Assembly (NCBI GenBank): GCA_000708835.1
Contig: DF237220.1
Coordinates: 1-64,000, forward strand
DNA: 64,000 nucleotides
Direction: 5' to 3'
DNA from: Klebsormidium nitens
Lineage: Eukaryota > Plantae > Klebsormidiophyceae
In this document: positions 51,581 to 64,000 of the stretch, in pieces
How the letters are laid out: the number at the start of each line of letters is the position of its first letter
Position numbering within the stretch: the stretch's first letter is position 1
Position numbers and translations under genes: made by a program
The notes under the pieces: generated by a model
Told to the model about the DNA's origin: nothing
What the model saw: the letters and a program-made list of their open reading frames with translations, nothing else
Database searches by the model: none

Positions 51581-54500
51581 ATGGGGCGGAAGCGGGACCG
51601 CAAGCAGTCTAACGCGGTGTTGGGCGGAGGCGCCGGTGGTCGTCGAGTGAAACTCGACCTTTGGACGCCTGACCCAATTGCGGAAGCAAGGAAGGCCCGA
51701 GAAGCAGCTTCTGCGGCAGCCCCTGCAGAAGCACAAGGTGCGGAGCCACAAGATGCCGCAGTGGTCAAGCATTCGCGATGATTCACGTCTCTTTGCTTCT
51801 CATGTCTATAGGATGAAATGTGAAGAGCCGGTATTTGACATGCTTTTTGTAATTGACTATTTGCAGAAGCTGCTGCTGAGGACAGGGCCCCGCTTGGAGC
51901 CCCATCTGACAATGGAGAGGCCACGACGGGAGGGCCCAAACTTGCAGAAACAGGTGGGTACAGCGGGACCCCTGAGCCCCTGTTAACCCAGTCTACTCCC
52001 TGGTCTTGCGATACCCTGCTAACAAGTGCCCTGCGCTGCGCTTCTCCTTTGCTGCGCCGCGGCAAGAGGCCGTACGCAGGCTGTGGTTCCATGCAATTGG
52101 GGCCACATCCGGCAACAGGGAGGGCTGCGACCACTGCGTCCCAAATCGGGCTGGTGGTTACGGTGGAGCGGATGCAAGTTCGCAACGGGGCAGGGTAACG
52201 TATCCCTCTCTACACCACACTGGAAATGAAGCAGTTGCTGAAAGTCCTGACAATTGTCGTGCACTGTCAAAATACTTTACGTGTTGAATGTTGTCTGCTT
52301 GACGCAACTGAAATCCCAGGTTCTCGCATCAGTGCCTCGTTGGCAGGATTGTGAGCGATTGAGAGAGGAAGTCGTTCAGAAACGGAGGATTCTCAGCAGA
52401 CAAATTGGAGATCATCTTGAACGTTTTTGCCTCTGGTCTTGGGAGCTCGCTGCCACCCTTTCAAGATGGGCATCGTGTCACTTTCTATATGTTGGAATCA
52501 AAAAGAGTTATGCAGGAAAGGAACTCTGTCAGATGAGTGCGGATCAAACCTAAAAAAGCCAGGCATGGGTAGAAAGTGCTTCGTCCTGCTTTAAGTATTC
52601 ATGTTCTCTTGAAGTTGATATGGCAGTCTATACTGTCTGCATGAAACAGAAAGTGGAGAGCCAGCTGCCCTTGACAAAAGATGGACAGCTATGATGTCCG
52701 CGGTGCTGCCTCAGTGACGTACTTCTGTGTATCCTCACATTGCCTCATGTATCTTCTTTGCAGCTCCCTCCGGTCTGCGCCACCTGATTGGTGCTTACAG
52801 TGAGGATGAAGAGGATGAGGCATCTCCCCAGGAAGAGGCAGCAGCGCCAGCTGGAGCACCAGGAGAAGACGTGGATGACAAGGTGACCCACAGCGGCAGC
52901 GGACTTTTGCTTTCTCAGTGGGAAATATGCGCTAAAGTGTGGCACGGCTGGTGCTGAAGAAAGTCCGTCTGTCGAAAGGGTTGCCTGGCTCAGACTGGCG
53001 CAAAAAGACTGGCTGTTTGAGTGGACGTTTAAAAATAAGGCAGCGTGTAGCTGTAAGAAGCCTTTGAAATGGATTCTTTCGTCAGTCTCCCTTTCGTTCT
53101 TTGCTCTTTCAGGTCAAGAGCTTTCTGGCGGAGCTTGAGACGGACGGGCTTCTGGAAGAAGGCGAAGAAGCGGCTGTGGAGGAGGACCAACAACCGACAG
53201 AAACGGGCGGTGTAACGTCAGACCATGATTCAGGGGCGGTGGCTCTTGGACACGAGGTGCAGAGAGCGGGGGGCGCTGGCGCAGGAGAGAGCGAACGTGA
53301 TGATGGGGAGGGGGAGGACGAGTTTGTGGAGGAGGGCTGGCAGGCCATCCTGGACCCGGGGAGCGGAGAGCACTACTACTGGAACACGCTGACGCTAGAA
53401 ACGACCTGGGACAAGCCCAGGACGATCAAGCGCAGGCGCGGGGGTGACCCGGCACTGGCCCCGCAGGATGAGGCGGGGGACGGCAGCGGAGTCGCTGCAA
53501 GTGTCGAGCCAGGGGAAGCCGGACAGGGGGGCCAAGTGGAGGAGCAGGAGCAGGGTGGGGAGACGCAGCCTGAAGGCCCTTCCGTACTAGAGACGGGCAG
53601 GGAGGAAGGCAGTGAGGGTGGGCTGAACACTGGTGAGAAGAAAGGACGGCTCTTGGAAGGAATCACTGCAGAAGGTTTGGGTGCGGACAGGGAGGAAGGG
53701 GACGCTGCTGGCCCTCTGCCATCGAAAGAGGATGTTCTCGAAAGTGTGCCCAGCACCGCAGAAACAGATGGTGCCGTGACACAAGGAAGGGTCTTGGACG
53801 ACGAAGCGCTCCCTGCGGTCCAGAGAAAGGTCGTAGAAGTTGGGGCCACTTCTGATGAAGCCATCGATTCTGGGGATACCTCAGAAGCATCCGACAGCGA
53901 GGATCAAGTGGACGAAGATGGTCATGCAGCGGATGCTAGAGAGGCAGGGCCTCAGGCGAGGGGACAGGGGAGCACAGGGGAGCGCGAGCGGGTCCCTGGG
54001 AGTGTGGTTCGGGATGACGAGAAGACGAGGAGCGAACAGGAGGAGCTGGTCAGCGGTCTTCTGCAAGAAGGGGCGGCACTGGTGCGGCGCCTGCAAGAGC
54101 GAGCAGGGTAAGTGGCGACTGAAAGATTCTGCCTTTCTATGTGATGACAAAATTGAAGTAGAATTGTTTGCCAGAAGTTTCTCCTACTTGTGATAACGGT
54201 TGGCCGCTTCTGTGGCAATTGGTCTGTGGGCTCTTTGGACCTTACTAGTTTGTTTAGGACGGAAATATCTCTTTCCTTACCAAAGCCTGCACTCGTGGGT
54301 CTCGAGTCACTGGCAACTCAGGACCTCTCTCTGAAGGCAGGGATATGCCACTCTCCAGGAGCTGCCTCCTTGTGGATTTAAGCTCTGTCCGTTTGTTGTC
54401 TTTCTCCAAACACTCCACCCCGAATCGAGAACTGATATTATACTCGTATGGTGAAATCGAAGAATGTTCTGCGTGGCTCAAAAGACAGTTAATTAAGACT

Positions 54501-57500
54501 CGGGCCAGCCGCAGATGTCGTCACATTTGATGTCAAACACGAAGTCCTTGGTTTGGTTCCTCCCAGCAGGCCGTCTTTAGCGCATGTCTCCCCGTTGGCG
54601 CGCTTGGCCATCCAGGCGGAGACGGTGTCCTCTCTGGCGTTGAAACTGCAGACCGCCAACAGTGCAAACACGATTTGGGCCCGCATCTGTGAGCAGCTTT
54701 TGCTTCTCTCTGCGCGTGCCACCGAAATGGAGGGCATGGCAGAGGGCGGGCGTGGTACTGGCCGCACAGAAGGAGAGACGCAGGGAGGCTCTGATGGGCC
54801 GCACACGGACGAAGAGATTGAGGCGCTGCTTGAAGACGTGGAACCAAACAGGGAAGAAAACTTCAGGGATCGAGAGACACGGCCAGAGAGCTCCGGAGCC
54901 ACGGGCATGAGGCTGTTTCCGATTCCTTATCGGGGCGTGCCACTCACGGGAAGTAGTGCTGGAGAGGGAAGTACAAGCGGGATGACTCCAGAGGTTGGGT
55001 CGGCCCAGCTTGGTGGGCAAGAGGAGAGAACGCCGTCAAAGGCTGAGCTGTTGCAGAGAAAGACGGCAGACCTGCAGAAGCGGATGGCTGCCATCCAAGC
55101 GTTCAAGACGCCCGCGAGCGAGCCCCCAGCCGAGGCCACCGCCTTGGTTGGGCTTGCCGGCTACGGGTCCGAGATGGAGGATGGGGAGATCGCACCCTCG
55201 GACGAGGCCCCCACCTCGGAAGGTGCCAGGCCCGCCAGCCGCAGCGGCCGGTCAGAAAAGCCGTCGGGGGAGGACGACATGGGGATTGATAACACCGAGG
55301 GGCGGCCAGAGGCCGGGGTGGGTGCGCCGGGGCAGCTCCGCAGCACGCTGCAGCAGCTGCTGGCGCTGGGGGCCTCTCTCCACGAGCAGTCGGGACAAGG
55401 GGCTACCAGGGGGGTGGGGACTAGTCCTACCCCACCGCCAGGGGCTGCTGCCTACCCCGAAGCGAGTCTCTTCACGCCCCAAAATCCGTATCCGAACCCG
55501 CCCCCGATGCCGTATAACGGGGCGGAAGCAGCGCCTGAGCCACCGTCGTACGACCCTTTTGCCGAGGCCCACCCCCCGCCGCCCCCAGCCAGCCCTCCAC
55601 CCGAAGACACGTGGCCAGCTCAGCCGCCCTTCCCTCCCGAAGAGGCGTTGCTTCTGGAGCCTCAGCCCCCTCTCAGCATAGTCGAAGCTGCGGTGGTCCC
55701 CGTAGTGGAGCCTCCACAGGTGCAAGGCCCCGTTCTATTCGCGCCTCCAGTGCGTGTGGCTCGGCCGTTGGAAGCGGTGCCGAAAGTAGAGCAACCCAAA
55801 TCGGTCGCCGAAGCAGCCGCGGCAGCAGCAGGAGCAGCAGCGGGCTCGCGAAAGGGTGAGCGAATATCTCGAAGGGGCTAGCTACCGCTGGTGTTTCCAT
55901 GCACGCACCGTTCGGATGGGATCAGGAAGGCCGCTTCCCCATCATGGAGGCCTCCTAATGGAGGGGCTGCCATGCTGGTCCTGGTTGGTTCGGCCGTTTA
56001 GCTGGTTCGTCATTGCTCCCTTGAAGGGTCTATTGCAAACTGGCTGATGACAAGGGCCCGACTAGCTTCTGCTCTCTTGCCGAAGTGTTTCCTTATTCGA
56101 CCTCGTGTTTACCGTGCAGCCAAGCCGAAGAAGCCCGCATCTGCTCCTGTCGGGCGGGGGCTGTCCTCCGCCAAGAAGGTGTCGTCGCTCATGGACAAGG
56201 TGGGCCGTACACCCTGCCACCACGGGGTGTTGAACAAGATTGCCGGCGTCAGCCGGAGATCTTGCTGCATTGCCGTTTCTTATGCTGGCAGGCTCTGAAG
56301 AGTTGTTTCGGCAGCTTTACCGAAAGACACTATCATTGCGATCCGAAGCCGTCTTAATATCGTCAGCAGCCTTCGCATCATACTTCCTGCTTTCAAACGA
56401 ACTTAAGGCAGATTTGAAACTGTACATGTCAACCTTTGAAGGTGCTGAGGCAAAGGAGCTCCTCGCTTCAGTGTTTGGAGGCACAGTGACTGTCGTCATA
56501 TGTCTGTAGACGATATTACGGGACCCCTCGTTCATTTCCCCCATGTTTCGGGTGCAGTGGAAGGCGGCGGCCCAGGATGCGCAGCCCCGCAAGGAGGGCC
56601 CTCTCTCTGCTGAGGAACTGGAGCGGCAAAAGGCCGCGGAGCTCGAGGTGAGGCCGCAGCCGGCACAAGGAAGGAAGCTAGCGCCTAGGTGCCAAGAGCA
56701 TCACTGTGCATTGTGCCCTACTGACTGGCCGGATTTGGCAGCTGTCAAAGGAGGCGGTTGCTTTCCACGCGACGTTCGCCACGTTTATGTTCGATACGAG
56801 CCGTCTTTCCGACGGTTGTCGTTTGTTTGGCTTTGTTCCTCACTTCCACCAGTACGGTACGATCTTCTGTTTGGTCCTAAGCGACCCCGTTTGCGTCTGT
56901 CCTCCATTGGCCTCTAAAGGCTGAAGAAACCGCTTTGGACACCTACGACGACAAGACTAAAACCGAGGAGGGAACAGGTAGTCACCTGGTTGCTCTGCCC
57001 GCAACCTTGCAGGAGTGGAGGCGGCAGCAGATTGCCAGCGGGGAAGCCGATAAGAACGCCAACTTTGCGCCAGTCGAAGGGGACTGGTGAGAAAGCACTC
57101 CGCGTGTAGCATCCGGCATCCTACTCCCTCCTGTGTTGGCGCGTGCTTTGAACGAAAGCCTTCACTTGTTACGCATCCGCTTTGTTCGTGATGCTTATAG
57201 CACTCACGAAGCTACTGAAGGCAGCGAATCCAGTTTCCTGGGCCCGCGCGTTGGTGCAAAGTAAGCTGATCACACGTGTGCGATCACATTCAGAGTATTG
57301 CTGTGCTACATTTTTAGACAAAGAAGCATTTGTCCTTCTTCCTGGACCTTGTATAAGCTGGTAAAGTTCCTTGGTTGCAGGCGGAAGCGCGTGAAGAAGG
57401 CGCAGAAGCAGGCCGAGAGGGAGGCGCGCCAGGCTGCGGCTCCCAGCGTCAGTCCGCCGCACGCGGACAAGCCCGACCTGGCGGCTCTCGCGAAAGGGCT

Positions 57501-57949
57501 GCAACCGGGCTGGCAGGTGAGCAGTCCCGCCGTTGCCGGTGCTTGGCTACCGAACCGTATTCTGCTTCGCACTACACGTTCACTTCGTTGATTGAGGTAG
57601 CGCGAGGGTGATGGCGTGTCAAAGATGTGCAAGCTGTGGCGAGGGTGGGGAAGCTCGGCAGCACTTCAAGTGTGCAGCGAATCATCTGCTCAGGTTTGCG
57701 GGATAAGAACGGAAGCTTGCCTGGCGTTGCTCTTGCGACGTTGTCGGAAAGGGGAAGGCCAACGGAATCTGCCTCTTGGAGTTACGACTCAAGGGTTGAT
57801 GTCTGAGTTCCTTTCACATCTTCGACGATTGCAACGGACTCAAGCGTCGCTTCTTCCTGCTGCAGCCGTTCTTGGATCCAGGCTCAGGTGACGTGTATTA
57901 CGGTAACCTGCGAACGTCCGAGACGACATGGACAAGGCCGGCCGGGTGA
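51581..57949 (+). CDS. FNBP4: FNBP4-like two-WW-domain protein
   Basis: MGRKRDRK...GRRVKLDLW and LIGAYSEDE. WW1 is EGWQAILDPGSGEHYYWNTLTLETTWDKP. Then KVSSLMDK|W and EWRRQQIASGEADKNANFAPVEGDW|R. The C-terminal WW is PGWQ|PFLDPGSGDVYYGNLRTSETTWTRP. TGA at 57947-57949. Confidence 0.88.
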
Positions 57950-57981: not shown

Positions 57982-58050
57982 AACTGTCGGTCCGACTCGG
58001 AACTGTCGGAATTGGAATTGTACGTCGGAACTGTCGGAAGTTGGAACTCA
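57982..58050. repeat. Short imperfect tandem repeat (AACTGTCGG x3) just downstream of the FNBP4 stop
   Basis: AACTGTCGG occurs at 57982, 58001 and 58029, with a TCGGAACTGTCGGAA..TTGGAA unit twice. Confidence 0.75.
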
Positions 58051-58514
58051 CGTCGCTGTAGCTGGCCGTACTTGCACGATGGGTGTGACGTCCAAAATCC
58101 TGTACTACCTAGGCTGTAGAGCTAGGTCCTAGTCCTCGCTCAAATATGTACCTACAGTGATTTTATTGTCACTGTCAGTGTCAGTATTCGATGTCAACAG
58201 CACTACTTCTGTTGGCTGGTTTCCGAGTTCGCGCACTATGTTACTATATACCATAAATAGAAGCGAACTTGTCTTACCTAGCGTCTTGCTTCGTCTTCTT
58301 GGTAGCTGTTGCTCAGCTCTTGTTGATGAGCTCGTGAATGTTGGTGAGACTGGGTCCTAGCAACTCGGAGGACTCGGGAGCCGCTTTCCCAGCTGCCCGG
58401 GTACATTGCAATCACATTGCAGAGGGAAATCTCCCCCAAAGCCTCCTTCAACCTTGTCGAAAGAAGCAAGCCTGCGGCAACAAGTGACGGATTCATTCAG
58501 AGATTCTGTGCAAA

Positions 58515-61500
58515 ATGGGCAACTGCGCCTGTGGCGCAAATGGCGCCAACGAGCGTTTTCTCAAGGAGCAAGTTCCTAACACCATAGCAAGTCTTTTTGA
58601 GTCGTATGCTGGCCGAAAGATAGCTCTTTCCGTGCAGGACTTGCAGCAGGTTTTGATAGACCAGGTATGCGACCTTTCCCAATTCTGAACACTTGCAGAG
58701 GTCTGCATGTCTGCACATGACTTCTTGAGGAGGTCTGCATTTTACTATATGTGGTGCAACATCATTCTGCTCAGCCTTTCTATAAAGCTTTCTGCAGGTT
58801 TAAAATACGTTTAAAATGTATGCTAGTCGTAGCTAGTCGAATGGACTTTATTGGGAAAACGTCCTTGTTTCCTCAGCCTGCTAATGCAAGCCAACATGAA
58901 GCAATCTGGTCCATCTATACAAGGACAATGAGACTCTCAGGCCACAGAAAACCCCAGCCATGTTCTGCAGAGGATCAACAATTCAGAGGCCCATGCGCGG
59001 CAGCTGATAGTAAAGCACCGGAAAGAAGTAGCATCGGGCGGGAAAGATGCCCTGGAACTGGAGCTACCAGGCTTTGCCTCTTTCCTTCTTGATGCAGACG
59101 TCAATGCACTCCAGGATTGTGACAAGGTTGGTCAACTGGCAAACAACTCAGCTTCTTTTCACAGTGTGTCAGGTCTCTTGCATTACACACCTCTCAGCAA
59201 CTAGATACCTCTTGTGGCTGGGGGGGCTTATCATGCGGCTTCATAGCACTAAAAAGCTGTTCAGGTGGGCCTGCTTTTGTGCTTAAAGAATAGGATGCCA
59301 TAAATAGTTGGACCAATTATCTACTGCTCATCAAACATGGGTCCAACTTAGTGCGACTGTGTCAAGCTCAAGCTCAGCACTTATATTTGATCTCACCAAT
59401 TTGACACCAACTTGACCAAGCAACCCTGACGTTCACGAGAAGATTGCAGAATCGTTTAAAAGACAAGAGCGCTGGTGCAGCACCTATGTGTCAATTGAAC
59501 AACCCCCTACCTTGCAGTCTAGCTTTGACTTCCTTAAGCAAAATCTATGCCCTTAATTCCATTGAAATCTCAGGCCTTCTTTAAGCTGTGATGGTTTGTT
59601 CTCTGCGGTAATATCAAGCTGCTCAGCAATTGAGGAATGCCCCTTTCCCAACTTTCCGTCTTCTTCACAAGTTGAGTTAGGTAAGCTACTTCCCTGCATC
59701 CAAACATTGCTTGATTATTTCTGTATCCTTTTTGCAGCTTACCGTACACTGCCTGCTGAGATTAGCAGTCATCAAAGCTTCAAGTCTGACAACAATTTGC
59801 TTTACCAAAGATCTTCAGTACAGTCCTTCCTGAAGCTTTCAGAACAGCTTACATGGCTTTTCGTACCCCTTCTACCAAAGCAGTTCTGGTAAGAAAGATG
59901 ACATGTGCATTGCTTTCATTCACTGTCCTTGAGAGCCCTTTCCTTCAATTATGTACCCGATGTTCTCAAAAAATGTAGTGCAGAAGCCTTAAACTGCTGG
60001 CTCGTTGGACATGTGACACATGGGCCCATACAGGGAAGAGAGAGTCAAAACGTGGAGTCCTTGAGCCACCTCACCTCTGAGCGCTTGAATCATTATCTTA
60101 AGCCCATCATCACATTCTCCAGGTTACGAACAACATGCACCAGCCCCTCCCACAATATTTCATTCAGTCTGCCAGCAGAGCAGTTGAGGCGGCTGGAGGT
60201 ACCGTCGCCAGCACCCTTCTTGAGGCCTTGAAGGGAGGTGCCCGTGTGGTCGACTTGGAAGCGCGAGCAGATGGGGAGGAGATCAAGCTATCCACTGGTG
60301 GAATGTAAGCTCACCCATCGGTCATCTGTTTATTACAAGACATGGAAGGTGCCTTTCCAGGTCTCTTGGCATGTCAAACGTGTCAGAGGGCAAACAGGAG
60401 GATTGACCGTGGCAATGACTGGTTGTGATGCAAATCCTGTTTATGGGCTCGAGAAACAGTATATGTCAAGGTGCTCCCCGAGTCCTCATGGGTATGTTTC
60501 GCCTTGATCTGTAGAGTGTTCTTATTTTCCTTGAGTCAGCAAAGATACTTTGGCCAAGCGTCGCAAGACAAAAGCCAAAGCTAGATCAAAGGGTTCGCCC
60601 GTCTGCCAATTCGATTTCTTTGAAGCTTGTATCCTTGCATGCTTGCATGAGCTTGAATTTTGACAAAAGCTCCCGTTGGTGCTGCAATAACTTGCTCACA
60701 ACACTCTCCGCAGCTCAGATATCTGTAGGCGATCACTCGGGACCAGCCCTCGCTTCTTGACTATGTCACTAGAGAATTGTCATCAACATCTCCTCAACCT
60801 TGCGATTACAATTTCTGCAGCACTGCTCCCATACATGAGTTGCTGACTGCGGTCAAGGAGGGGGCGTTCTTGGCGTCAGACTTTCCTATCATCCTCGTGA
60901 TCGAGAACCGTCTCTCTGCACCGCTGCAGGATCTCTTAGCTCAGGTGTGTTTTGCTAAGGAGTCGAATGGGCGTGCTGGCACTTAATATTTGATCTTATT
61001 CAATGCTCTCAAGTGTCAATCTCTGATCCTCCATCTGGACCGAGCTCTTTACAGGCTGCTTAAAACCTTTTCTTATCTAGCAGGAACCTGATAATTTGTA
61101 AGTGGATTGGACATGTCGCGGCATTAGTCAAGGACAGACTGTTTCTCAAACGTCAGCAGCAGGTATTGGTGCACATGAGATTTGATAGTCCTCCTGTAAG
61201 CAGCCTTTTCATTCTGTACAAGATTGTTGTATATGCACACGCAGCCAAGAGCGAAAGGGATCCCTTTCAAATTGCTGTTGATCGAAGCTGCAGTGGTACA
61301 CCTGTTTGATTCAAGGTTCCCATTGCTTTCCTGCAGCAACTGAAGGACATTTTCGGCGAGTCGCTTTTCACACCCCCCAGTGGGACACCGGGCGCTGTTC
61401 TTCTCTCTCCGAGTGACCTAATACGGAAGGTCGTGATTGCCGAAGTGGCTACTGAATCACCGCCAAACGAGGCAGGCTCCGCAGCCGTCACCCCCAACAG

Positions 61501-64000
61501 CGTCCTTCCTCTGGCCGGCGCCTCTTTCATCGATCTGGACGACATGCAAATCAAGGGTAATAAGGGTGTTCCTCTATGAATGACATCATGAGGACACAAC
61601 TCTGGGGCTGTACTTCATCATGAAGCCTCGACCGCATGCCTGGTTTCTGTGAGGCTCTTCCCTTGCTGCAATTTTCTGTCGCCTCCCTCTTCTGCATGAA
61701 TTTGAGAGAGCGTCTGGGCTCTCCTGGATAATCCTACCGGACGTTGGCTGGCTGGATCCATTGTAGGACGATCCAAGAAGTGCTGCCCTCAGATGACTCT
61801 ACTCCAAATTGAGCTCCACAGAGTTACGCTGGCGGTGGATCTCACCATCTAAATGACCAGCCGTGGTCTCTGGGAGCCTCTTGTTGTTGCCAGCTTGCCT
61901 GAGACATTTCGCCGCCGCGTCTTCTGCAGCAGACAAGCGAGTCGGCACACAGAGACAAGCGGCAGCTTTGCTTGGTCAAGCTGATTCCAAGGAAGAAGGC
62001 AGCTTCTCACCGCTGGTCTACATCCGGGGCCTTAAGGCGTCGGAACCAACCCACTACGCTGAGAAAGTTGGCACCCTAGCGAGCCTGAGCGAGGCTTCTT
62101 TCTCCAAATTGGCGGGCTCGACTCCTTCGGTGCTAGCCAAGTAAGCAGGGGCTTTCGAGGTTGCGGCGGTGCCTGCAACTGTGGCAGATGTAGCAATCAA
62201 ACACCTTGAAGCAGCTTGCATGGATCTGAATGTGTTCGTCCACTTATTTGGAGCTGAGTTCTGACCGTTTGAACGTCCTCAGTCACAGGCTTAGACGCTG
62301 CAGATGCAGACTCCCTTTATCACCGAAGTGAAGAGACCGCTGAGATGAATGTTCGTTCACTTTTCCTTGTAAACGGTGACGAAGAGCTGGTCCAAGCCAT
62401 GCTTTTCTCGTTCTGTCCAAGTTTGGCATTGCAAAGGTTTCAAGCCCTGCTCATCTTCCTCTGACCTGACCTGACCTGCCCTCCCCAATCCGACAGGTAC
62501 GCCGCAAACAATCTGATCCGCGTCTATGGTCCTAATGGAGAGACTGGCTTCTCTGGCCCCATGAAGGCCTGGTCCTACGGAGCCCAAATCGTGGCCAGCG
62601 ATACCAAGGTGCCTGTCAATCAGTCCCCTTTCCTACGGTAGGAGTGGCCAGGTTACTAGAACTCGTTCAGCTCGTATCCACTGCCATGCCCTGTTCGTTT
62701 CGCATGCAGCAACTCTTTGGTCGTCTTCATCATTGCAAAGATTGGTTGAGTGACGCACATTACCAGCTTTCAGTCTGCCCCACCTGGACCAAATTCTGTA
62801 TCAGACCCAGCGCCTCTGACAAACAACCGTCTTCAGGCTGAGTCGAGGAGAAAGACAAGTGTGAGTCCGCCTCTATTAGTCTGAGACTGTGTTTTGACAG
62901 GCGCACAAAACACATGCAGCTACGCCAGGAAACGCGGAGACAAGGAAGAAGTGGAGAAGACGTGTGGTTGAAAGGCGTTCATATCTTCATTACAGTGTGA
63001 ATATATCGTGTGATGGATAATCAACCATGTCATAAGTCATACTCCTCTTGCGCAGGCGGGCGGAAGGCAGCAAATGCTCCAGCAGGGCTTCTTCTCGGCC
63101 AACGGCGGTTGCGGCTACGTGCTGAAGCCTGATATGTTGAAGGCGGGCCCGAGCATGGGAGCCGCCGTCGATGGCGCTGCCTTTGATCCCAAAGCCAAAA
63201 ATCGTGTCAAAACGACGCTCAAGGTGCATATCTTTCACACGTGATGCGCATTTTTCTGAGAGTGTCAGCAGCTTTCTCAGCCGCCCACGATACGATCTGC
63301 TTCTCAAAGAGCTCAAATTTGCTCGGGGATCGAAGAGGCACAATTTTCGCATCTGGTACATGGAAATGAGCCTTTCAACTTTCAGTGTGACGAGTACCCA
63401 CGGTCAAAAATTGCCCTTCTCAATTCAGCGGCGGGACACCGTGAGGCAGTCTGCGAGGTTGAGGGCACGCTGAGTGTTTGCAAACTAGCTGCAGGCGCTC
63501 GAAAGAAGTGCTGGGAGTTCTCATGATCTGATGATCAGGTTACGAGATTACATGATCAGCCGCGTCGATTTCGTACGAAGAACTCAGAAGATCGACGTTG
63601 ACAGCGCTCTAGACTGGTGATGTTCCATTTACACGGAAGTTTTCTCCCAAGACAAATCAGCGGACGCTCTTGCGATGCACCCTTTTATTTTTGCATATCA
63701 GCAATCTGAATTTGCAAGAAAAGTTCTTGAAACGCGCTTTTATTACCCAGCTATCATCTGAATTTTACGGCATCGAACCCCTCTAGCGGGAACTTGCTGA
63801 CTGCCGTATACCCAAACTGTGAGCTCTGCCAATCATTTGATAAGTCTCATCTGACGTGGCGGCATTGGCGTTGCAGGTCATGATAGTTTGGAGCCAGTCC
63901 GACCAGACTGCAGGGCGACCCGACACGTTCGTACGGGTGAGCCAGGATACCGCGGGCGTGCTTTGGATGCAGACAATTTCCATCTCCATGATCGCGGCAG
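58515..64000 (+). CDS. Phosphoinositide phospholipase C-like protein (EF-X-Y-C2) with a degenerate active site; continues beyond the window
   Basis: In-phase exons: 58515-58664, 58971-59126, 60123-60304, 60821-60944, 61337-61556, 61930-62140, 62497-62608, 63056-63223, 63877-63936. Motifs NMHQPLPQYFI, ALKGGARVVDLE, AFLASDFPIILVIEN, NNLIRVY, WSYGAQIVA, GFFSANGGCGYVLKP and FDPK...VKTTLK|V. Confidence 0.9.

Follow-up and report, generated by a model that had tools for sequence, protein, structure and literature searches.

Can a phospholipase C that has lost its catalytic histidines be a maintained gene, and if so, what is left for its product to do? The question is raised by a locus of the streptophyte alga Klebsormidium nitens at the end of a 64,000-nucleotide stretch of contig DF237220.1 (positions 1 to 64,000, from here on the window). 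A gene resembling PI-PLC, the phospholipase C that is specific for phosphoinositides, runs along the + strand from 58515 to 63936. Its nine exons, joined from the window sequence by a local script, give 1383 nt or 461 codons with 0 stops, and all eight introns are of the GT..AG type. A first-pass annotation, made from the letters alone, had proposed a maintained but catalytically dead PLC. Our analysis points the same way: with a probability of about 0.7, the gene is a transcribed and spliced PI-PLC paralogue that lacks the histidine pair and the asparagine ligand of the active site, is kept by purifying selection, and encodes a protein that is most likely non-hydrolytic and acts non-catalytically at the membrane.

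Catalytic residues and domain identity

In PLC-delta1, His311 and His356 form the general acid/base pair. To locate the corresponding positions, residues were mapped by profile alignment to solved PLC structures. For PLC-delta1, the Protein Data Bank (PDB) has a chain of 624 residues, which was taken to start at residue 133; this offset is well checked, since the mapped residues all fall on residue numbers known from the PLC-delta1 literature. A profile made from exon 3 and its orthologue (see below) aligned to PLC-beta3 (E 7e-4) and to PLC-delta1, with the enzyme motif YFINSSHN over Y.IQSASR and VELDV over VDLEV, and with exon-3 residues 18, 19, 44 and 46 at PLC-delta1 positions 311, 312, 341 and 343. 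The two-sequence profile was needed here, as exon 3 alone gave no PLC match among solved structures; exon 5 alone and the exon-6 profile had no matches either. The alignment to solved PLCs thus bears out the exchanges of His for Ser and Asn for Arg that the first-pass annotation had read in the X box, as well as the change of ELD to DLE (Table 1).

The second histidine is missing too. It belongs to a loop between two flanking alignments, and the residue equivalent to His356 is one of K-L-S-T-G, depending on where a length difference of four residues is placed. Under no gap placement between these two alignments does the loop contain a His, in agreement with the earlier reading that LSTGG had replaced the second HG motif. 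Further downstream, residue 28 of exon 4 corresponds to position 390 when the exon is matched without gaps to chain positions 236-270 of PLC-delta1, and residues 8 and 10 of exon 7 correspond to 549 and 551, the exon-7 profile being ungapped against PLC-gamma2 (E 6.5e-4) and against PLC-delta1 chain positions 415-447. The annotated change of ENH to ENR was confirmed with Glu390 in place, and RVY and NGGCGYVLKP are retained as described. Directly after RVY the K. nitens protein has a 2-residue deletion (at 62528), which removes the Pro of RVYP. With respect to the calcium ligands, Asn312 is lost to Arg, and the positions of 341, 343 and 390 are still acidic (Asp, Glu and Glu).

The exon-5 profile aligned to the PLC-gamma1 sequence SPNQLKRKILI. 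Ala and Val, encoded at 61439-61447 in exon 5, probably stand at the positions of Lys438 and Lys440, a placement for which the alignment was extended by three residues along the PLC-delta1 sequence.

Membership of the PI-PLC family was examined with a Pfam scan done exon by exon, with cut-offs of 23.1 bits for PI-PLC-X and 28.8 bits for PI-PLC-Y. PI-PLC-X (PF00388) matched exons 3, 4 and 5 with 18.8, 23.6 and 16.2 bits, only exon 4 being above the cut-off, and PI-PLC-Y (PF00387) matched exons 7 and 8 with 13.4 and 26.2 bits, below the cut-off because these are fragments. The X and Y matches are colinear with the gene, with the profile positions in order. The exons of an orthologue on an environmental contig, L001, score higher, with 26.5, 30.1 and 16.6 bits for PI-PLC-X and, for exon 7, 38.4 bits for PI-PLC-Y, which is above the cut-off. 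Pfam matched neither exons 1 and 2 (102 residues) nor exon 6, which leaves the Y profile unmatched over its first half, and no PH domain was found by Pfam; about 102 residues precede the X box. Two exons that follow the Y box in L001 (8113-8253 and 9179 onward) may represent a C2 domain, as by eye they resemble that of plant PLCs; scanned as fragments, they had no significant Pfam match. The layout is a short N-terminal region, X, a linker, Y and then, by way of the orthologue, a presumed C2, without a PH domain. A PH-less layout is also that of plant PI-PLCs (PMC4122161).

Expression, orthologues and selection

Transcription was examined by comparing RNA contigs from four runs of four studies with positions 58300-63999 (5,700 letters). 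The runs are labelled only 'RNA?', and we conclude that they contain RNA because spliced joints are present. Each of the eight predicted joints appears as a GT..AG skip in every one of the four runs, and the word depth of exon contigs is about 90-190, against 0-10 in most intron bins. Exons 3, 4 and 5, which carry the dead X box, are linked on one 528-nt contig just as the model has them, in 4/4 runs and at a depth of 96-184; in run X10 the exons from 3 onward are found together on one contig of 2314 nt. The first-pass annotation had named another X-box exon with HN and HG as an alternative; the transcripts of all four runs use the predicted dead exons. No RNA/DNA differences, editing or competing joints were seen across the contigs of the four runs; rare variants drop out of contigs, so a minor isoform may exist. 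No X-box-like motif bearing HN or HG, including HN[ST][YF], occurs in the six frames of 58000-64000.

The search for relatives started from the exon that holds the lost residues. In a HMMER search of exon 3 against 1.84 billion cluster representatives, one genuine relative was found, an exon-sized open reading frame of 53 residues with 56% identity that sits on the 30-kb contig L001. With local tblastn of the joined model, every exon was found on this contig, in order. The resulting L001 model has nine exons with phases identical to those of K. nitens, GT..AG introns throughout and 464 codons with no stop, and is followed by two further C2-like exons. Identity between the two proteins is 59%. 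At the 90% level, the open reading frame clusters with two more members. One further locus, L003, is 99.99% identical to L001 and represents the same organism, and two Logan assemblies (L004 and L005) come from a close relative of L001.

The orthologue has the same dead site. At the 311/312 position L001 lacks both His and Asn and has a Gln/Ala-rich stretch with a 4-residue deletion; it also reads Asp-Leu-Glu, and its His356 loop is RVTFGG, again with no His. Judged from these sequences, the loss of the catalytic residues is old and maintained, predating the split of the K. nitens and L001 lineages, because the orthologues share it. L001 (2780-2903; 5613-5730) keeps ENH and RVYP, as opposed to ENR and RVY plus deletion in K. 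nitens. Because of ENR, the lost Pro of RVYP and the lower Pfam scores, the K. nitens copy appears to have moved further from the canonical form than L001, and the drift seems to be ongoing.

The best-conserved stretch of the family is formed by the last 49 residues of exon 6, with 73% identity. This segment matched neither Pfam PI-PLC-Y nor any solved PLC, and is a candidate for a family-specific surface.

Whether the gene is under constraint was examined with the ratio of non-synonymous to synonymous substitution rates (dN/dS). For K. nitens and L001, four methods gave dN 0.30, dS 1.5-1.8 and dN/dS 0.17-0.20, a rough ratio as dS is near saturation. The unsaturated pair L001 and L004, compared over exons 1-5, gave dN 0.015-0.018, dS of about 0.15 and dN/dS of about 0.10, with 29 synonymous and 9 non-synonymous differences in 278 codons. 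For the X box alone, the values were dN 0.021-0.025, dS 0.19-0.21 and dN/dS 0.10-0.13. The histidine-less catalytic domain is itself under purifying selection. Exons 1-5 of this pair are 95.2% identical with 0 gaps, compared with 87.1% identity and 155 gap columns in the introns, and between K. nitens and L001 nucleotide similarity is limited to the exons. The low dN/dS and the gap-free exons therefore indicate a maintained gene and not a decaying pseudogene.

The possibility of an unexpressed gene with dN/dS near 1, also named in the first-pass annotation, was not borne out: the PLC-like gene is expressed and its dN/dS is about 0.10-0.20. Its description as maintained is supported by the expression, by these ratios and by the dead site common to the orthologues. 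In operational terms the features of a pseudoenzyme were found, i.e., homology to an enzyme, loss of key residues, expression and purifying selection.

Other searches concerned the spread of the family. Searches of a protein word index with exons 3, 1 and 8 returned no candidates, blanks that are uninformative in view of the length filter and the short queries. A metagenome scan with the exon-6 profile gave 87 pattern matches with 0 confirmed, which says little on family spread. The sole locus from the corresponding scan with the exon-7 profile, L002, was a 16-residue chance match with the rest of the gene absent, and two proteins from the exhaustive exon-3 search (P0002 and P0003) were discarded as repetitive, low-complexity proteins by inspection.

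Gene structure and flanking transcription

The positions of the exons and of the mapped residues are collected in Table 1. The nine exons, the splice sites and the open frame of the first-pass annotation all stood; its description of the gene as intact did not, as the window ends before the presumed C2 domain. Of this gene, the window covers the N-terminal part, the X box and the Y box. Exon 9 closes at a GTGAGC donor, and RNA contigs extend for 141-255 letters that are absent from the window; a C2 domain in K. nitens would therefore be encoded past base 64000.

Table 1. Exons, intron 2 and mapped catalytic positions of the PI-PLC-like gene of K. nitens (window coordinates; residue numbers of PLC-delta1; L001, orthologue)
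Feature	Position	Strand	Description
Exon 1	58515-58664	+	ATG, MGNCACG, then EF-hand-like N-terminal region; 60% identity to L001, same start
Exon 2	58971-59126	+	Second part of N-terminal region; without Pfam match; 67% identity to L001
Intron 2	59127-60122	+	996 nt; spliced out in main transcript form
Exon 3	60123-60304	+	First third of X box; holds the lost catalytic residues; PI-PLC-X 1-51
Exon 4	60821-60944	+	Middle of X box; PI-PLC-X 68-106; 71% identity to L001
Exon 5	61337-61556	+	End of X box and start of X/Y linker; PI-PLC-X 108-141
Exon 6	61930-62140	+	Linker and start of Y box; no Pfam match
Exon 7	62497-62608	+	Core of Y box; RVY; PI-PLC-Y 52-84
Exon 8	63056-63223	+	End of Y box; NGGCGYVLKP at 63101-63130; PI-PLC-Y 91-113
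Exon 9	63877-63936	+	Start of presumed C2 region; gene continues past window
His311 to Ser	60174-60176	+	Profile alignment
Asn312 to Arg	60177-60179	+	Profile alignment
Glu341-Leu-Asp343 to Asp-Leu-Glu	60252-60260	+	Swapped, still acidic
His356 loop to KLSTGG	60285-60302	+	Between flanking alignments
Glu390 kept	60903-60905	+	Profile alignment
His two residues after Glu390 (ENH) to Arg	60909-60911	+	ENR
Arg549, Tyr551 kept (RVY)	62519-62527	+	Profile alignment

At the 5' end, the frame of the ATG at 58515 is closed shortly upstream by a stop at 58485-58487. The joint of exons 1 and 2 (58664/58971) is present in the four runs, whose contigs follow the genome without a break from 58300 to 58664. 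In a contig of run X10, 24 unrelated letters are joined at 58633, inside exon 1; this junction probably stems from chimeric assembly or marks an alternative 5' end of rare use.

Intron 2 is kept whole in a separate 1051-nt contig (59100-60150) in all four runs. The depth of this contig is 17-44, compared with 76-128 for the spliced joint, and is far above that of the other introns. In transcripts that keep intron 2, the frame would meet a stop at 59202-59204; the retention may reflect slow splicing or a regulated, unproductive form of it. No Rfam family was found when 58000-64000, intron 2 included, was scanned, and there was no similarity between the K. nitens intron 2 and the L001 intron.

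The upstream neighbour, at 53068-57600 on the + strand, codes for a Pro-rich, acidic protein that contains a WW domain (PF00397, E 2.8e-10, residues 89-117 of the frame at 53068-54108). A 3.58-kb contig in two runs passes from the region of this gene directly into the first exon of the PLC-like one, and therefore the transcripts abut or overlap, or there is read-through.

A loop in the second of the orthologue's two C2-like exons (L001 9179-9240) reads VREYNAQQQDNV, with Asn/Gln at positions that are Asp/Glu in plant PLC C2 domains. The C2 calcium site of L001 may thus be altered too.

Possible function and relation to known phospholipases C

We infer that phosphoinositide hydrolysis has been lost, since both histidines are missing in all lineages, no conserved replacement is present, and His311 and His356 are needed in PLC-delta1. 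Catalytic-centre mutations strongly lower the activity of the rat PLC-delta1 enzyme (PMC11809592). The retention of the three acidic positions, of Arg549 and Tyr551 and of the NGGCGYV strand suggests that the protein still requires a pocket of defined shape.

An attachment to the membrane is proposed from the N-terminus. The protein starts with Met-Gly-Asn-Cys, reading MGNCACG in K. nitens and MGNCVSS in both L001 and L004. The PROSITE-type myristoylation pattern is G-{EDRKHPFYW}-x(2)-[STAGCN]-{P}. Both starts match this N-myristoylation pattern and have a nearby Cys for S-acylation/palmitoylation. Starts of this kind are found in plant calcium-dependent kinases and CBL proteins. In a review of plant PI-PLCs, there are no words that start with 'myristoyl' (PMC11809592).

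In the mechanism that we propose, myristate and palmitate on this start, together with the C2 domain, would hold the protein permanently at the membrane. There it would bind some component of the PLC pathway, a ligand or a partner, without cutting it, acting as a decoy, sensor or scaffold. The retained Asp/Glu/Glu calcium ligands, along with Arg549 and Tyr551, could hold calcium or a phosphoinositide head group; alternatively, the protein might hold partners of an active PLC enzyme. A wider version of this proposal is more tentative, and we would put it at less than even odds: the gene would found an old family of lipid-anchored pseudo-PLCs in Klebsormidium-like streptophyte algae, independent of animal PRIP, in which a constrained His-less barrel (with its acidic cluster, the Arg549/Tyr551 contacts and the exon-6 segment) senses or sequesters calcium or a phosphoinositide head group, or regulates an active PLC at the plasma membrane.

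Several observations count against the non-catalytic, membrane-bound protein that we favour. The lipid anchor is called from a pattern match only, the presumed C2 domain of the K. nitens copy falls outside the window, the family is found in three lineages so far, two of which are close to each other, and with three of the four calcium-ligand positions acidic and Arg549/Tyr551 kept, the pocket is not erased, so that a changed chemistry is possible. The last point leads to the best-surviving alternative, namely that the protein is still an enzyme, with a TIM barrel that catalyses via other residues or acts on another substrate, for example as a calcium-dependent phosphodiesterase built on Asp/Glu/Glu. 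Purifying selection is equally strong on the X box (dN/dS 0.10-0.13 versus 0.10 overall), and the acidic residues at Glu341, Asp343 and Glu390 would fit such an activity, as would Arg549 and Tyr551. However, around the pocket K. nitens and L001 share neither a His nor another residue that would be an obvious general base. Positions 311/312 are Ser-Arg in the former and a Gln/Ala stretch with a 4-residue deletion in the latter, the residue after Glu-Asn is Arg in one and His in the other, and an indel sets the two apart in the loop that follows RVY. We therefore consider continued catalysis unlikely.

A decaying but transcribed pseudogene is far less probable still. The loss of catalytic residues, Pfam scores below those of the orthologue and the transcripts that retain intron 2 would be expected from decay, but the 461 codons contain no stop and all splice sites are intact, an orthologue at dS of about 1.6 keeps all exon phases and the open frame, dN/dS is 0.1-0.2, and the close relatives have 0 exon indels compared with 155 gap columns in introns. 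Least probable of all is the explanation that a wrong exon model has produced the dead X box, the true mRNA using an HN/HG exon or being edited, given the contig of exons 3-4-5 as modelled in 4/4 runs without other letters or competing joints (among contigs, from which rare variants drop out), the lack of HN[ST][YF] in any frame of the locus, and an orthologue with the same dead exon.

A dead, conserved and expressed PLC in a streptophyte alga would make it possible to isolate a PLC scaffold function from catalysis, and would be a second, independent case of a PLC turned pseudoenzyme beside animal PRIP. PI-PLC signalling in the plant lineage continues to puzzle. Land plants lack the classic animal targets IP3 receptor and PKC (PMC4122161), and PI-PLC signalling in plants is clearly unlike the animal scheme (PMC11809592). 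If the wider proposal of an old pseudo-PLC family is true, that family would be a non-catalytic branch of PLC signalling in the plant lineage. The gene is also a warning for annotation, as domain content alone would count it as a PI-PLC in family surveys. Our literature search found no description of a K. nitens pseudo-PLC and no Klebsormidium PLC account or PLC count. As far as this search shows, a family of lipid-anchored pseudo-PLCs in Klebsormidium-like algae would have gone unrecognised; inactive PLCs as such are already known from PRIP.

The canonical plant PI-PLCs (for example AtPLC1-7), built of an EF-hand-like region, X, Y and C2, share with the K. nitens protein the domain order without PH domain, and their NGGCGYV.KP, RVY and E-N motifs are kept, a closeness that we judged from architecture and from the sequence of AtPLC2. 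Unlike these enzymes, the K. nitens protein has lost both catalytic His residues and the Asn ligand, has Asp-Leu-Glu for Glu-Leu-Asp, probably misses the basic residues after the X box and carries a lipidation-type Met-Gly-Asn-Cys motif.

Among animal proteins, the mammalian PRIP/PLCL1-2 proteins come closest in concept, being maintained PLC homologues without catalytic competence, as proposed here. PRIP binds Ins(1,4,5)P3 and PI(4,5)P2 through its PH domain. A lipid-anchor motif is not known as a PRIP feature. Three reports describe PRIP as an inactive PLC relative that takes a non-catalytic role in phosphoinositide-related signalling and binds IP3 and PI(4,5)P2 (PMC6726632, PMC5511194, PMC5390332). 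The analogy to PRIP drawn in the first-pass annotation holds for a maintained PLC that lacks catalytic residues and fails for the PH domain according to Pfam: PRIP is PLC-delta-like, whereas the K. nitens protein has no PH match, and the stretch ahead of its X box is only about 102 residues long. With an animal delta-type protein on one side and a plant-like PH-less type on the other, the origin is most likely independent of PRIP.

In the plant lineage, AtPLC8 and AtPLC9 have Y-domain deletions and two catalytic-centre mutations, their activity is unknown, and no homologues were found in other species (PMC11809592), and PpPLC2 of Physcomitrium does not hydrolyse PI(4,5)P2 (PMC4122161). They resemble the K. 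nitens protein in belonging to the plant lineage and in having an activity that is doubtful or altered. Going by their descriptions, the loss at the active site is far greater in K. nitens, where His, Asn and His are all missing, and in contrast to the outliers AtPLC8 and AtPLC9, the dead state described here is common to diverged algal lineages.

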